Part shown: positions 21,512 to 26,747 of the stretch, in pieces
How positions within the stretch are numbered: the first letter of the stretch is position 1
Layout of the letters: each line of letters begins with the position of its first letter
Virus record (IMG/VR): IMGVR_UViG_3300044796_000662
Span: 248,001 to 312,000 of that record
Length of the DNA stretch: 64,000 nucleotides
Direction: 5' to 3' (one strand)
Position numbers and translations under genes: made by a program
The notes under the pieces: model-generated
Told to the model about the DNA's origin: nothing
Databases searched by the model: none
Seen by the model: the letters and a program-made list of their open reading frames with translations, nothing else

Positions 21512-23176
21512 TTACCAGCTCTTGTTGGAGCGGGTCTGCTTGAGGGACTTCTTGGACGACGCCTTGTCCTGTGACTTGGCGTCGCTCTTGCTCGTTTCGT
21601 GAGCGGGGACAGGTGCGGGAGGCGTAGGCGGTGCAGTGACACCGACCACGGCCGGAATGGCAGGCGAGGCCGTAACGCCCCCGAGGTCACCCGAGAAGGG
21701 TGAGCTGCCGCCAACCCATGCGGGGTTGCCCTGGAGGTTGATGCTGCTGTCAGCGATCCAGGTGACCGGCTGGACAGCCGGTGCCACCACCGCTCCCGTG
21801 AGGGAGGGCTGGACCACGGAGCCAGAGCCCGTGAAGGATGCCGAGGTCGTCGTCTGCGACGATGTGCTCGTCATGACGCCGAGTTCCTGGAGATCGTAGT
21901 CCGCGCCGGCCGAGTAGGACGCGACGCCGACGCCGCGGGTGACCCCGCGTTCGAAGCTCTTGAGGTAGCCATTGTTCTGCACGTAGAGCGACGCGCTGGC
22001 CATCTTGCCGCCGATGTTGGACGAAGCGGCTGCGAGCTTCTCACGTCCCCGGCGCTTGAAGTCGTTCGCCCGGTGCTCCATGACCGCCGCTGCGGCCGCG
22101 TAGTCGCCGCGCTTGGCCTGCGACTCGGCTTCGAGCTGCGAGCGTACGAGCTGCGCGAGACCCACGATGTCATCGAGGGTGGCGTCAAGCTTCTTGTCCT
22201 CGTCGCCCTCCTTGACGAACTGCACGCGGCCCTTGGACTCGACCGTGTGCGTCTCCTTCTTGCCCTGCGCGTCGAAGGTCTGGAAGGTTGCCTTGACGTC
22301 GAAGACGTTGACAGCGCGGGGACCGTGAGCCTTCTGCTTGGCCATCTTGACGGCGACCACAAGATGGCGCGTCTCCTCGGCGAGCAGGTCGGGCACGTTG
22401 ATGTAGACCTCACCCGTGTTCTCTTCGTCCACGTCCACGTCCGAGATGACCTTCTCGACGGAGTGACCGTTGAGCGGCTTCAACTCGATGCGGACGTCAG
22501 TCGCGTACGTCGAGATGAGCCCTCCCAGCTCGGTCCCGAACGCCTGGAGGGCCTTGTCCGGGTCCTCCACGTGTGCGTAGTTACCCTTGCCCTCCTTGGC
22601 GAATTCCGTCAGGAAGTCCGGCGAGAAGTCCGTGCCGCTGCCGTAGCCGAAGGCACTGGCAGTCACGTGCTCGGCGTTGGCCTTGAGCAGCTTGATGATC
22701 TCGGCGGGCTCCTTCGCGGGACCGACGTTCGCCTGACCGTCCGTGAACATGATCACGCGGTGGATGTAGCTGCCGTTGAGATCGAGGTTCTTGAGCAGGT
22801 CGATGCTCTTGAGCATCCCGCCCGAGAAGTTGGTCATCCCGCTCGTGGTGAGCCCCTGGACAGCCTTACGGAACTCGTCCTTGTGGCCTTCGAGGCGTTG
22901 AGGCGCCGCGACCACTCGAACCTGCGAGTCGAAGGTCACGACGCCGAAGACGTCGTCACCCTTCATGTGCTCGATCATCTTGAGCACGCTCTGCTTGGCG
23001 TACTCCAGCTTGGGGCCTGCCATCGACGAGCTGGTGTCGATGCACATGATGAGTGCGAGCTTGGGCCGGGTCTTCTCCGCGTTCACGGCGGGTGCGGTGA
23101 GCGTCAGAACGAGATGGGCGTCCGTCTCCTGATCGAAGCGGACCTTCTCTTGCGTGAGTCGAGTTACGAGCTTCAT
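21512..23176 (-). CDS. vWA (MIDAS) domain protein with low-complexity tail
   Basis: DTSSSM, GMTNF, FTDGQAN; start set at ATG 23176. Confidence 0.85.
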   Translation of the reverse strand: MKLVTRLTQEKVRFDQETDAHLVLTLTAPAVNAEKTRPKLALIMCIDTSSSMAGPKLEYAKQSVLKMIEHMKGDDVFGVVTFDSQVRVVAAPQRLEGHKDEFRKAVQGLTTSGMTNFSGGMLKSIDLLKNLDLNGSYIHRVIMFTDGQANVGPAKEPAEIIKLLKANAEHVTASAFGYGSGTDFSPDFLTEFAKEGKGNYAHVEDPDKALQAFGTELGGLISTYATDVRIELKPLNGHSVEKVISDVDVDEENTGEVYINVPDLLAEETRHLVVAVKMAKQKAHGPRAVNVFDVKATFQTFDAQGKKETHTVESKGRVQFVKEGDEDKKLDATLDDIVGLAQLVRSQLEAESQAKRGDYAAAAAVMEHRANDFKRRGREKLAAASSNIGGKMASASLYVQNNGYLKSFERGVTRGVGVASYSAGADYDLQELGVMTSTSSQTTTSASFTGSGSVVQPSLTGAVVAPAVQPVTWIADSSINLQGNPAWVGGSSPFSGDLGGVTASPAIPAVVGVTAPPTPPAPVPAHETSKSDAKSQDKASSKKSLKQTRSNKSW

Positions 23177-23403
23177 TGGTTGTCTCCGTACACGGTTTCG
23201 GTTCGGTCTCGCCGGATGCGGAGCTGGACGTGCTCCCAAATCACGACTGCCTTAGCGATCGTCCTCAGCTTCCCCAAACCCTTGCGGGCGCGGTCGGCTG
23301 TACAGAGACCGTCCCGGCGTGCCGGGCAAGTCCAAACCCTTTTGGGCGCGACTCGATCTCTTCGCACTTCTTACACCATTGGGCCCTTGTGCGCAAGAGC
23401 CAG

Positions 23404-23598: not shown

Positions 23599-23967
23599 TT
23601 ACTTGAGTTCGACCGTCGCGCCGAGCTTGACGAGCGTGTCTCGCAGCGCCTCGGCTTCCGCCTTGGGCAGCGATTCCTTCAGCGTCTTGGGCGCCTGCTC
23701 GCTCAAGTCCTTGGCCTCCTTGAGACCAAGACCCGTGACCTCTCGGATGGCCTTGATGACGCCGATCTTGTTCGAACCCGAGTGGACGAGGATGACGGAG
23801 AACTCCGTCTGCTCCACGGTATCCGGCTTCGTGTCAGGGACGGGCTTGACCGTCACTGCCTGAGGGACCGCCTGGACGTTCCACTTGACTTCGAGTTCCT
23901 TCGTGAGCTTGACCAGCTCGGGAGCCGTGAGGTTGCCGAGCGCCGTGACAATCTGTTCCGAGTTCAT
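23599..23967 (-). CDS. rplL: Ribosomal protein bL12 (L7/L12)
   Basis: [38 protein letters not shown]. Confidence 0.93.
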
Positions 23968-24054
23968 TTGGGCCTCCTTGAGGCTCTGTTCTGTGTCGTC
24001 GATCGGTGACATCCCCGTATGTCGTCGAGCGACGACATACGGGGATCACTGGGA

Positions 24055-24609
24055 CTAGCCGACTGCCGCGATGAACGTAGCAGCTTCGAGGTACGGCAGC
24101 ATCTTCGGGTGGGCCTTGTGGCCCATCGTGAAGATGGGAGCCGTCATCGGAAGTGTCTTCGGCTTGAAGGGCTTGCGCAGGAGCTTCATGCCTGCCTGCT
24201 CCGGCGTGCGACGGTCCTTGCGGCTGTTGCACGGGTAGCAAGAAGTCACGATGTTGTCCCACTCCGTCTTCCCTCCCTGAATGCGCGGGACCACATGGTC
24301 GTAGTTCAGCGCCTTCATGTCCAACTGACGGCCGCAATACTGGCAGCGGAACCCGTCGCGAGTGAACACGTTGATGCGCGAGAACTTGACGCCCTGCTTG
24401 TGCCGGCTGACCGCCCTCTTCAGACGCACGACGCACGGGAGTGCGATCGTGATCTTCGGGTTGGTCTCCGACCCCGCGGAGGAGATCGTCTCATCGTACT
24501 CTTCGAGGACATCGATCTTGCCCTGGAAGTAGTCGAGCACGGCGTCCTGCCACGGCACAAACCTGTGCGGTGACATCCACGGCGTGAGCACGAGAGTGGA
24601 GTGAGACAT
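24055..24609 (-). CDS. HNH endonuclease (McrA-like)
   Basis: RINVFTRDGFRCQYCG, DHVVPR, WDNIVTSCYPCN. Confidence 0.9.
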   Translation of the reverse strand: MSHSTLVLTPWMSPHRFVPWQDAVLDYFQGKIDVLEEYDETISSAGSETNPKITIALPCVVRLKRAVSRHKQGVKFSRINVFTRDGFRCQYCGRQLDMKALNYDHVVPRIQGGKTEWDNIVTSCYPCNSRKDRRTPEQAGMKLLRKPFKPKTLPMTAPIFTMGHKAHPKMLPYLEAATFIAAVG

Positions 24610-24616
24610 GACGCAC

Positions 24617-24649
24617 CTACCTTTTTCGCCTTCGTCTGAGCCTTTTCAT
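24617..24649 (-). CDS. Leader peptide MKRLRRRRKR
   Basis: SD AGGGAG 5 nt upstream; ATG AAA AGG CTC AGA CGA AGG CGA AAA AGG TAG. Confidence 0.6.
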   Translation of the reverse strand: MKRLRRRRKR

Positions 24650-24703
24650 TGGAACTCCCTTACTGGGGTTGGGCCTTAGCGGACCATTCCGCCAAGTCCC
24701 AGG

Positions 24704-24791
24704 TGCTCACGGAGGGATTCGAACCCCCACGTCCCTTGCGGAACGGCCGGGTTTGAGCCGGCTGCGTCTACCTACTTCCAGCCACGTGAGC
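24704..24791 (-). tRNA. tRNA-Leu(CAA)
   Basis: Loop CTCAAAC, long variable arm. Confidence 0.9.
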
Positions 24792-24907
24792 ATGTGTGTG
24801 CGAGAAAAAAGAACAGGGCGGGTACGTTGCCGTATCCGCCCTGCACAGGGGTGACCGGATGCCCGGCCGCCCTCCACCACTTCATCGGGCGCAAGGCCCG
24901 CGAAGAC

Positions 24908-25492
24908 CTACCGCGACTTGACGTGCCGAACACGGGGGATGGTGTCCAGCGTCGCGAGCACCGCCTCGTTGGCGGCACGAACCTCAGGCTTGAGGCTCTG
25001 GGAGACCTTGAGGTAGTGCGGGTGGCGCAGCCACTCGCCGTACGACAGGTTGCTCCGAACCTTGTTGTCCTTCTTGCAGCTCGACAAGAGGTTCTCCTCG
25101 ATGTTCGGGCCGCCGTCCTCGTGCACGACGAGATGGTCCACTGTCAGAGGCACGTCGTTCCTTCCGCAGTAGCGGCAGGCGTACCCGTCGCGCCGGAAGA
25201 CGTTCCACTGGATCGTGGGGTCGATGTTCCTGGCGCTCTTGCGGAAGATGGCCTTGGCCAGCTCTCCGTTCGAGGACTTCGTCAGGATCTCGGTCTCCAC
25301 GATGTCTGTCTGGCGCAGGAAGACCTTCCAGTCATCGAGCCCCATCTCCAGGAACGTGAGAGGGAGAGCCGCCGCCTTGTGGTCTTCCGGGAAGAGGGTC
25401 ACATAGGCGCGCTCCGAGTTCGCGTACACGGCACCGACCATCTGGATCGAGTTGCCGACCTCGTACAGGTTGATGTCCTTGAGCGTTGCCAT
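24908..25492 (-). CDS. HNH endonuclease-like protein
   Basis: VFRRDGYACRYCG, TVDH, ENLLSSC; the ORF extension through tmRNA is not accepted. Confidence 0.8.
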   Translation of the reverse strand: MATLKDINLYEVGNSIQMVGAVYANSERAYVTLFPEDHKAAALPLTFLEMGLDDWKVFLRQTDIVETEILTKSSNGELAKAIFRKSARNIDPTIQWNVFRRDGYACRYCGRNDVPLTVDHLVVHEDGGPNIEENLLSSCKKDNKVRSNLSYGEWLRHPHYLKVSQSLKPEVRAANEAVLATLDTIPRVRHVKSR

Positions 25493-25515
25493 GTTCATCC
25501 TCATCTGGGTTGTAG

Positions 25516-25899
25516 TGGAGCTGGGCGGAATCGAACCGCCGTCTCCAAGAACGTCCTGACCGTCGTTTACGATGCGTAGCCTGATCCTCAGGCGGGATCC
25601 CCTCTGAACCTCGGGGCGGGTTTGCAAGCCATCGCTCTTGCGAGCTGGGAGACGTGCGGCCCTAGACCCTCAGAATGCTCGCTCCCTCATTGGGTCAAAG
25701 GCGGGGAGCCCAGCCTCAAGGGGTTGACGATTCTAGTGATCAGGTTGAGGCGCCCTGATCGAATCGGCTCAGGCCGCGCGGGCCTGGGCGACGCCGTTGT
25801 CGTTGGCAGGTATTTCGCCTCGATTTATTTGAGCGGGTCGAGGAGCCCGCTTACACGTAGACGATCGTTCGGTTCCCGGATCGAAACCAGGGCAGCCCC
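25516..25899 (-). ncRNA. ssrA: tmRNA, tag (A)ANDNGVAQARAA at 25769-25807
   Basis: 5' GGGGCTG / 3' CAGCTCCA acceptor with G3.U70, T arm, internal ANDN...AA* tag. Confidence 0.95.
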
Positions 25900-25937
25900 T
25901 TTCAAAGAGTCCCTTACACCAAGCACAAAGAGAAGTT

Positions 25938-26747
25938 TCAGAGGATGTGTGAGATGCGGGCGAGCGCCTTCACGATCAGCTCCGCCGACTGCTTCAGGAA
26001 CGTGTAGTCGAGCGTCGCAGGGGTGTCGGTGGGCTTGTGGTAGTGTGGGTTGCGCAGGAACGCGGTGTCCGTTGCAAGCAGCGCCTTCCAGCCGGCGTCC
26101 CAGAAGGACCCATGGTCGCTCAGACGCGAGAGCATGGCCGCCTCGGTTCCGCTGGGAACCGTCACGGTCTCGTAAGGGAGCGGCGAGTCGATGCCCTCGA
26201 ACAGCTTCAGGAGCGAGGCACTCTTCGGATTCGACACGAGCGCGAGGAAGTCACCCTCCTTGCGCTGGATGCTGACGCCCTCCACATAGGTCTGCCCCTC
26301 GCTCTTGTAGCCGAGCATCTCCAGGGAGATCATGCCGAGGACGTCGTAGCCCTCCTTGCGCAGCCACTTGCAGTGGTGCCCGCTGCCGATGAGGCCGTCC
26401 TCCTCACGGTCGAAGGCGACGAACTGGATGCGGTGCGAGTCCGGCATGTGGAACCGATACTCGCGGGCAACCTCCAAGAGGGCCGCCACCCCGCTCGCGT
26501 TGTCGTCAGCGCCGGGAGACCCCGGAACGCTGTCGAAGTGCGCCCCGACGACGAAGGTTGGCACCTTCGACTTCTCGGCCACGATGTTCACCGAGCCGTC
26601 TTCGAAGACGTGCTTGACGCACCACAGCCCCATGTCGTTGAAGGCGTCTTCGATGTACTCGACCGCCCGCGCGTGCTCGGGTGTGCCAGGCACGCGCGGG
26701 GTGCCCGCTAGGGCTTCGACATGTTGGCGCAGGCGTGACTCGTCCAT
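25938..26747 (-). CDS. M28 family peptidase
   Basis: GAHFDS, GADDNASG, EEDGLIGS, SDH, YH. Confidence 0.9.
   Translation of the reverse strand: MDESRLRQHVEALAGTPRVPGTPEHARAVEYIEDAFNDMGLWCVKHVFEDGSVNIVAEKSKVPTFVVGAHFDSVPGSPGADDNASGVAALLEVAREYRFHMPDSHRIQFVAFDREEDGLIGSGHHCKWLRKEGYDVLGMISLEMLGYKSEGQTYVEGVSIQRKEGDFLALVSNPKSASLLKLFEGIDSPLPYETVTVPSGTEAAMLSRLSDHGSFWDAGWKALLATDTAFLRNPHYHKPTDTPATLDYTFLKQSAELIVKALARISHIL

Follow-up and report, generated by a model that had tools for sequence, protein, structure and literature searches.

A conserved arginine- and lysine-rich leader before an HNH nuclease gene in a phage tRNA array, most likely a translational control element

The closest described systems to the element reported here, a very short arginine- and lysine-rich open reading frame (ORF) that precedes an HNH nuclease gene in viral DNA, each share some of its features. 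The leaders of amino-acid operons (hisL, leuL, pheL and thrL) are likewise short ORFs driven by a Shine-Dalgarno (SD) motif and placed just upstream of the regulated gene; they hold codons, in some cases minor ones, that specify a single amino acid in a run, and the speed of the ribosome on that run is the signal. The lambda bar minigenes, early AGA/AGG codons (PMC2490762) and the axe-txe mini-ORF (PMC8708949) also involve very short, SD-driven ORFs that end in AGR and, in these known cases, affect a downstream and potentially toxic gene in cis in a distance- and frame-dependent manner. In coupled cistrons and bicistronic designs, as at the present locus, the SD of the second gene (SD2) lies in or right after the 3′ end of the leader and the stop is a few nucleotides from the next start, so that re-initiation is plausible. 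Macrolide leaders (ErmDL and related; PMC8298421) are short as well, carry Arg/Lys-X-Arg/Lys and in some cases end in RLR. Finally, the post-transcriptional restraint of homing and HNH genes in T4-type phages (review PMC2988022) similarly concerns a nuclease gene among highly expressed genes whose translation is apparently controlled. The element studied here lies in a 64,000-nt stretch (the window; positions 248,001 to 312,000 of IMG/VR record IMGVR_UViG_3300044796_000662), which belongs to a viral contig of 362,937 bp and 62% GC and contains 51 tRNA genes and one transfer-messenger RNA (tmRNA) gene. Judged from its sequence, it behaves as a leader peptide or a mini-cistron with translational coupling would, and it fails the defining tests of attenuators, macrolide leaders and a strict rare-codon gate. 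We consider the arrangement most likely to be a real, previously undescribed translational control element; our literature searches turned up no account of a poly-arginine leader, either in front of phage HNH genes or within tRNA arrays.

The leader and the start of the nuclease gene are composed of the following features.

24655..24659, minus strand: SD of the leader (SD1), GGGAG, with a 5-nt spacer to the leader ATG, read directly
24617..24649, minus strand: polybasic leader, an upstream ORF (uORF) of 10 codons plus TAG, peptide MKRLRRRRKR
24614..24622, minus strand: HNH ribosome-binding site, AGG TAG GTG, covering the final sense codon and the stop of the leader
24055..24609, minus strand: HNH nuclease gene, 184 amino acids, with a CxxC...DH...N...CxxCN zinc-finger beta-beta-alpha-metal core

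Read from the minus strand, the leader starts with the ATG at 24649-24647, continues with nine sense codons (AAA AGG CTC AGA CGA AGG CGA AAA AGG) and ends with the TAG at 24619-24617. The original prediction, made from the letters of the window, had pointed to this mini-ORF with its good SD, which is real, and to an overlap between its stop and the HNH ribosome-binding site. This overlap was confirmed, as the TAG shares two bases with the HNH SD core AGGTG (24618-24614), which is followed after 4 nt by the HNH ATG (24609-24607), leaving a gap of 7 nt between the end of the leader and that ATG. Because the stop of the leader falls in the SD of the next gene, any control would have to be translational. 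The locus fails the test for attenuation, since the scan for terminator-like sites between the leader and the HNH gene gave none. Unlike the leaders of amino-acid operons, the phage leader has neither a terminator/antiterminator nor a conserved RNA structure, its downstream gene is a nuclease that neither makes nor charges arginine, Lys partly replaces Arg in its run and its stop lies in the next SD. RNAalifold predicted 0 conserved pairs over 24 sequences, the single-sequence fold of the window's leader region was no better than that of shuffles (z = 0.03), and the Rfam matches at E <= 1 in 23900-26000 were to tRNA and tmRNA only, with no T-box, riboswitch or leader family. The same folding results led us to reject a hairpin in which the purine tract would pair with the CU-rich Leu codons of the HNH gene, sequester the ribosome-binding site and be opened by leader translation.

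Conservation of the uORF ahead of HNH homologues, on which the original prediction depended, was found. Homologues were fetched from 54 IMG/VR loci and 80 metagenome loci, and the leader was present in 29 viral or metagenomic loci, representing 24 distinct sequences in which its own SD, start, open frame and stop are conserved and the frame is specifically constrained. It accompanied six of the seven best IMG/VR homologues. The six closest leader-bearing viral homologues, with HNH identities of 54-62% and contigs of 37.7-529 kb, all show an SD, an ATG and six Lys/Arg codons, followed by a stop that lies 7-10 nt ahead of the HNH start, and complete phage genomes of 513 kb and 529 kb are among the leader-bearing close relatives. 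The peptides include MKKRRRR, MKRRRRR, MRKRRRR, MNRRRRR, MRRKRRRR and MRKRRRRR, and also VRKRKRR, MFHLRRRR, MNWHSRRRR, MFSPKRLRRPR, MKKKKRLR and MPPTRRR. Across the family, leaders comprise 5-11 codons (18-36 nt), use all three stop codons and are separated from the HNH start by 3-15 nt. In 22 of the 24 distinct relatives the leader start has a GGAG-type SD 5-8 nt upstream, the final sense codon is AGG in 17/24 and the last three residues are RRR in 13/24. In the HNH protein tree (FastTree, whose supports are local SH-like values only), every leader-bearing gene fell into one clade with a support of 99, within which the leader occurs in 28 of 41 rows. This clade spans more than one substitution per site, and the tree would fit a single gain of the leader followed by about eleven losses.

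The association with this gene is also specific. Searching with a degenerate 24-nt leader pattern returned one match per genome in five relatives, and the 20 SD-preceded polybasic mini-ORFs present in 742 kb of fetched DNA all lie directly before this HNH gene. The rest of the window's own genome contains one other SD-preceded polybasic mini-ORF, of five residues and started by GTG. A repeat or mobile-element origin of the leader was rejected, there being no second copy in the genome. In one metagenome contig (L092, Ga0055451_10125565), a TTG-started, stopless K-R-R-R-R stretch in frame with HNH was read by eye at ~150-200; it may represent a former leader fused to the nuclease N-terminus. Fusion of leader and HNH by frameshift or readthrough was considered as well and rejected, as by eye the HNH frame is +1 in the window, L002 and L006 and 0 behind a stop in L003-L005 and L007.

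The leader sequences indicate that selection acts on the peptide-coding frame. Without Met1, the 24 distinct leaders contain 94 Arg and 38 Lys codons, that is, 132 of 157 codons (84%), with no Asp or Glu and one Gly. When the other two frames are read, Lys/Arg codons drop to 24% and 31%, and Asp, Glu and Gly codons rise to 66 and 30. The base G occupies codon position 1 in 1 of the 157 codons and position 2 in 97. Shuffling the bases of single leaders reached the observed number of Lys/Arg codons in 0.02-0.7% of trials (p = 0.0002-0.007), and for the window's leader at least eight such codons were obtained in 0.02% of trials. The changes that separate relatives are Lys/Arg exchanges and Arg-synonymous substitutions, among them first-position C/A swaps (CGG/AGG and CGA/AGA). 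The leader thus appears to be read as codons, because its Lys/Arg composition is frame-specific, and these patterns indicate a coding-level constraint, as an untranslated purine-rich tract would not give such a periodicity. They bear directly on the view that the leader is not a gene at all, and would instead be an accidental ORF in a purine-rich 5′ untranslated region or extended SD, or a trans-acting minigene that acts as a tRNA-Arg sponge. Its atypical codon usage does resemble that of non-coding DNA, and in this genome chance alone produces some ten Arg-rich mini-ORFs, most of which lie within genes in the wrong frame; short SD-driven minigenes ending in AGA do sequester tRNA-Arg in E. coli (PMC2490762). 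Nevertheless, frame-specific Lys/Arg, an own SD, a start and an in-frame stop have been kept in 24 diverged sequences of differing length and in exclusive association with one gene, and a sponge is hard to reconcile with one copy per genome that always has the same neighbour in cis. We therefore regard both forms of this view as highly improbable. The described minigenes and the axe-txe mini-ORF differ further from the phage leaders in that they have 2-8 codons and no conserved polybasic peptide, whereas the phage leaders have 5-11 codons, and both their Arg run and their partner gene are conserved.

Codon choice is skewed as well. Codon usage computed from 271 long ORFs of the genome gave Arg codon fractions of 0.39 for CGC, 0.215 for CGG, 0.17 for CGT, 0.098 for AGG, 0.093 for CGA and 0.027 for AGA, so that AGG, AGA and CGA together make up 22%, and AAA represents 0.05 of the Lys codons. 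As the original prediction had stated for arginine, the six Arg codons of the window's leader (AGG three times, CGA twice, AGA once) are all minor in the genome, and so are its two Lys codons, both AAA. Genes of this genome do show more AGR/CGA near their starts (29% in codons 2-11 vs 17% in gene bodies), but this ordinary N-terminal bias does not explain the 6/6 of the leader. The skew extends to the family: Arg codons of the leaders (n=94) are distributed as AGG 0.37, AGA 0.23, CGA 0.22, CGG 0.10, CGC 0.05 and CGT 0.02, compared with AGG 0.18, AGA 0.05, CGA 0.06 and CGC 0.36 in the HNH genes that follow them at these loci (n=321). Altogether, AGR/CGA account for 78/94 (83%) in leaders vs 93/321 (29%) in HNH genes (odds ratio 12, Fisher p = 7e-21, a value that overstates independence given that the leaders are related). 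The skew is unchanged if the last two codons, those in the overlap with SD2, are left out, and AAA similarly makes up 37% of Lys codons in leaders vs 10% in HNH genes.

Rarity itself, the other half of the earlier proposal, did not extend to the family. AGG, AGA and CGA are rare in the window and in the relatives G001 and G004 (59-64% GC), but they are among the commonest Arg codons in G002, G003 and G005 (49-52% GC), whose leaders use the same codons; the leader codons are consequently not rare in every member, as a rare-codon gate would have them. Because these codons are common in the relatives of lower GC content, the conserved trait is, by this comparison, the use of A/G-rich codons as such and not their rarity. 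Such a use could reflect tRNAs, the behaviour of early codons, or a need for unstructured, SD-like RNA between two starts.

These data have to be set against the mechanism first put forward for the locus, in which HNH translation is tied to the supply of the minor tRNA-Arg species (CCU, UCU and UCG) as a timer, or senses damage to Arg/Lys tRNAs. The timer would allow HNH translation only after the tRNAs of the phage had been produced, processed and charged, and the damage sensor would alter it upon cleavage of Arg/Lys tRNAs by anticodon nucleases of the host. In classical leader peptides, the codon that is sensed occurs in runs, and nucleases of the PrrC and colicin D types target the tRNAs for Lys and Arg. 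A sensor of this kind would fit the six minor codons of the window and the strong family-wide skew, the placement of leader and HNH gene inside a tRNA array and near the tmRNA, the tRNA-Arg genes CCT and TCT that relatives carry within 20 kb of HNH, and the presence of an RtcB RNA-repair ligase gene ~4 kb away. It would also fit the stalling caused by hungry AGA/AGG codons near a start (PMC2490762). The tRNA-Arg genes CCT, TCT and TCG (the last in two copies) are indeed in the window, yet ACG and CCG are there too, so that all Arg codons are covered and not specifically the minor ones, and the phages in general carry essentially all tRNA-Arg isoacceptors. In addition, the codons in question are common in the relatives of 49-52% GC, the leaders of high-GC members have begun to take up CGG and CGC in a manner that looks like amelioration rather than kept rarity, and Lys substitutes for Arg at early positions. 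A timer would gain little delay from an HNH mRNA that is co-transcribed with the tRNAs, and the leader was lost eleven or more times. On balance, we find this mechanism rather unlikely.

The geometry of the two starts suggested a different role. AUG-to-AUG distances range over 27-40 nt with a median of ~32, and leader length and spacer length are anticorrelated (Spearman -0.73), as if the start-to-start distance were held at about one ribosome footprint. Our favoured explanation, to which we assign a probability of roughly 55%, is that the leader is a translated, cis-acting ORF whose ribosomes sit on the HNH ribosome-binding site and pass to the nuclease gene by termination and re-initiation. 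The element combines a strong SD with an ATG; one to four Lys/Arg codons usually come next, then an Arg run and a stop in or just before the HNH SD. Because the distance between the starts is close to one footprint, a ribosome initiating, elongating or terminating on the leader would cover the HNH ribosome-binding site and would exclude fresh initiation there. HNH protein would then be made mainly by terminating ribosomes that re-initiate 3-15 nt downstream, or by fresh initiation while the leader is empty. The time a ribosome needs to clear the Arg/Lys run would set the amount of HNH obtained from an mRNA co-transcribed with a heavily expressed tRNA/tmRNA array, and that time would depend on the A/G-rich AGG, AGA and CGA codons. 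In high-GC hosts, sensitivity to the supply of tRNA-Arg or tRNA-Lys would follow naturally. Work in E. coli lends plausibility to the proposed mechanism. In this species, AGG, AGA and CGA early in a frame are slow or prone to peptidyl-tRNA drop-off. AGA/AGG codons placed early, and likewise short minigenes of the form AGA-AGA-stop, cause translation to stall and peptidyl-tRNA-Arg to be trapped (PMC2490762), 5′ NGG codons are reported to be suppressive through drop-off (PMC12204400), and a toxin gene has its translation controlled in cis by a mini-ORF whose effect varies with distance and frame (PMC8708949). A peptidyl-tRNA hydrolase gene, which would be relevant to a drop-off model, was not found in the contig. 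We infer leader translation, the coupling by occupancy and re-initiation and the direction of the effect from sequence comparison, and as to direction we favour throttling combined with coupling.

Coupling by itself could also serve to raise HNH output. The uORF might be a ribosome-loading device of the bicistronic-design type or a 5′ stabiliser with an irrelevant peptide, in which a strongly initiating, A-rich mini-ORF keeps the region unfolded, delivers ribosomes to the HNH start and/or protects an mRNA whose 5′ end arises through tRNA/tmRNA processing. A layout with SD2 inside the leader cistron is that of engineered bicistronic designs. The strong SD1, the A-rich second codons, SD2 in the 3′ end of the leader, a stop 3-15 nt from the next start and the absence of predicted structure in the family leader would all suit this role, and the HNH SD lies 10-25 nt from the tRNA 3′ end in leader-less relatives vs behind a leader region of at least 90 nt in leader-bearing ones. 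Likewise, the axe-txe mini-ORF raises toxin translation, possibly through mRNA stabilisation (PMC8708949), and AGA/AGG pairs after a start favour expression (PMC2034473). However, a loading device needs no peptide made only of Lys and Arg. A purine-rich tract would equally give Glu and Gly, yet Asp, Glu and Gly amount to 1/157 codons, and the C-terminal Arg run is the most conserved feature. Coupling devices are free of peptide constraint, whereas the Lys/Arg content of the phage leader is strongly constrained, and we consider a purely positive role improbable.

A peptide of this composition might alternatively act in the ribosome itself. Arrest of ribosomes with a macrolide or ketolide in the exit tunnel occurs at the +X+ motif, Arg/Lys-X-Arg/Lys (PMC8298421), and the leader, with a peptide whose every triplet is taken to fit this motif, could in principle report tunnel-binding small molecules of the kind common in soil. 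The family peptides are almost entirely +X+, RLR is found in several of them (KRLR in the window, and RLR followed by the stop in L104 and L112), and the habitat is peat and soil. In contrast to the macrolide leaders, the phage case lies in a tRNA array and has no alternative RNA structure that could turn a stall into an opening of the ribosome-binding site, and its downstream gene is a nuclease instead of a resistance gene. Such a sensor would also lack a biological rationale for a phage and would not require the A-rich codon choice, so we judge it very unlikely.

Several observations weigh against the occupancy and re-initiation explanation. The leader is dispensable: 13 of the 41 clade members do without it, including L001, the closest relative, whose HNH is 70% identical, and in its place these leader-less members have a strong AAAGGAGG SD. 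The leader is likewise missing from every homologue outside the clade, among them those of Tunturi_5, a cultured phage, and of Rctr197k, a virus from an enrichment culture. The A/G-rich codons might do no more than leave two neighbouring ribosome-binding sites SD-like and free of structure. In E. coli, expression can benefit from AGA/AGG directly behind a start (PMC2034473), so that HNH output may be increased by the leader and not reduced. The kinship of the 24 leader sequences makes the p-values overstate independence, and the RNA data consist of assembled contigs of one peat metatranscriptome, from which neither transcription nor 5′ ends nor ribosomes can be read. Distant homologues, Tunturi_5 and Rctr197k included, usually begin 20-30 nt past a tRNA gene, and no match to the leader DNA was found in cultured phages, near or distant.

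Defences based on anticodon nucleases strike the tRNAs for Lys and Arg, and we entertain as a speculative and quite unlikely reading that the poly-Arg/Lys leader is a sentinel of the availability and intactness of Lys/Arg tRNAs, either those of the host or freshly processed ones of the phage, switching the translation of the tRNA-array nuclease. If true, a single circuit would join the phage tRNA/tmRNA/RtcB island with tRNA-targeting immunity and a nuclease effector. More generally, the regulation and purpose of the large tRNA/tmRNA arrays of huge phages are still debated; the easily recognised poly-arginine leader is a compact, testable handle on the level and timing at which a protein gene among tRNA genes is translated, and could reveal if phages keep watch on the supply of tRNAs or on damage to them. 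The few leader-peptide mechanisms listed for bacteria would also be joined by a natural polybasic uORF that is free of structure.

The gene behind the leader is, by profile and core-residue tests, predicted to encode an HNH endonuclease. Its product matched the Pfam families HNH_5 (PF14279; 2.2e-15, 56.8 bits, cut-off 27.5) and HNH (PF01844; 4.6e-14, 52.7 bits, cut-off 21.4) above the gathering score over residues 89-143, as well as PHROG 16726 (5.6e-29) and HNH domains in the Protein Data Bank (PDB), among them 4h9d and those of IscB/Cas9. Residues C89, C92, D104, H105, N119, C124, C127 and N128 are invariant in eight orthologues. This genome has three HNH genes and a polybasic leader before one only. 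The second HNH gene (~25504-24908, minus strand; Pfam HNH 6.5e-08) is unrelated to the leader-bearing one, begins ~10 nt after the tmRNA, and has no visible SD and no polybasic leader upstream.

The surroundings of the leader and the HNH gene are formed by the following features of the tRNA array.

26747-25938, minus strand: M28-family peptidase gene, among tRNA genes
25899-25515, minus strand: tmRNA with tag ANDNGVAQARAA, also found by Rfam
24702..24791, minus strand: tRNA-Leu(CAA), immediately upstream of the leader region (ARAGORN, Rfam)
24670..24701, minus strand: stem-loop directly after the tRNA-Leu(CAA) 3′ end, in the 5′ part of the HNH leader region (single-sequence fold)
24013..24050, minus strand: perfect inverted repeat of ~15 bp between the HNH stop and the L7/L12 gene, read directly
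23599-23967, minus strand: L7/L12 ribosomal protein homologue (Pfam Ribosomal_L12 3.6e-26, plus dimerisation domain)
21512-23239, minus strand: gene for a VWA-domain protein of 575 amino acids, interleaved with tRNA genes
20319-19060, minus strand: gene for a full-length RtcB RNA ligase (Pfam 8.7e-87), bordering this tRNA block, ~4 kb from the leader and HNH gene

A consensus scan revealed no promoter-like site between tRNA-Leu and the leader, and for this reason the HNH message probably belongs to the transcript of the tRNA array. On the minus strand, the HNH gene is followed by the hairpin at 24013..24050, the L7/L12 gene, tRNA-Pro(GGG), tRNA-Ser(GGA), the VWA gene, two tRNA-Ser genes and RtcB. 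In relatives, the recurrent order is tRNA-Leu or tmRNA, HNH and then tRNA-Pro(GGG)/Ser, with the HNH orthologue almost always directly after tRNA-Leu or tmRNA (L001-L017 and L161). The leader starts ~65 nt after the tmRNA in L004, L005 and L007, and the gap is 680 nt in L003 and 311 nt in L006. This recurrent order indicates that the HNH gene is a syntenic, vertically inherited resident of the array and not a recent mobile insertion, and its constant placement suggests a function tied to the tRNA array instead of selfish homing. Phage homing and HNH genes are known to be restrained by hairpins that sequester the ribosome-binding site or by late promoters, not by a polybasic uORF; unlike the T4-type homing genes, the present gene is not obviously mobile.

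Metagenomes from peat and soil hold DNA identical or nearly identical to this region. In one soil metagenome the leader is unchanged and a lone G>A occurs at 24682, and a peat metatranscriptome contains an identical 10.7-kb contig over 22500-25890, assembled without information on ends or strand and possibly derived from DNA carry-over. The 363-kb record is classed in IMG/VR as a provirus with an estimated completeness of 76%.

Among the neighbouring features, the RtcB ligase gene is relevant to tRNA repair. The L7/L12 gene, which sits between HNH and tRNA-Pro(GGG), likely starts at the internal Met at 23967, after AAGGAGG. The sequence of the stem-loop behind tRNA-Leu(CAA) is not conserved, and L004, L005 and L007 have a different hairpin at the matching place after the tmRNA. 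The inverted repeat at 24013-24050 is not a canonical terminator, as it has no U-run and the terminator scan gave no call; lying between the genes for HNH and L7/L12, it may form a hairpin for processing or stabilisation.

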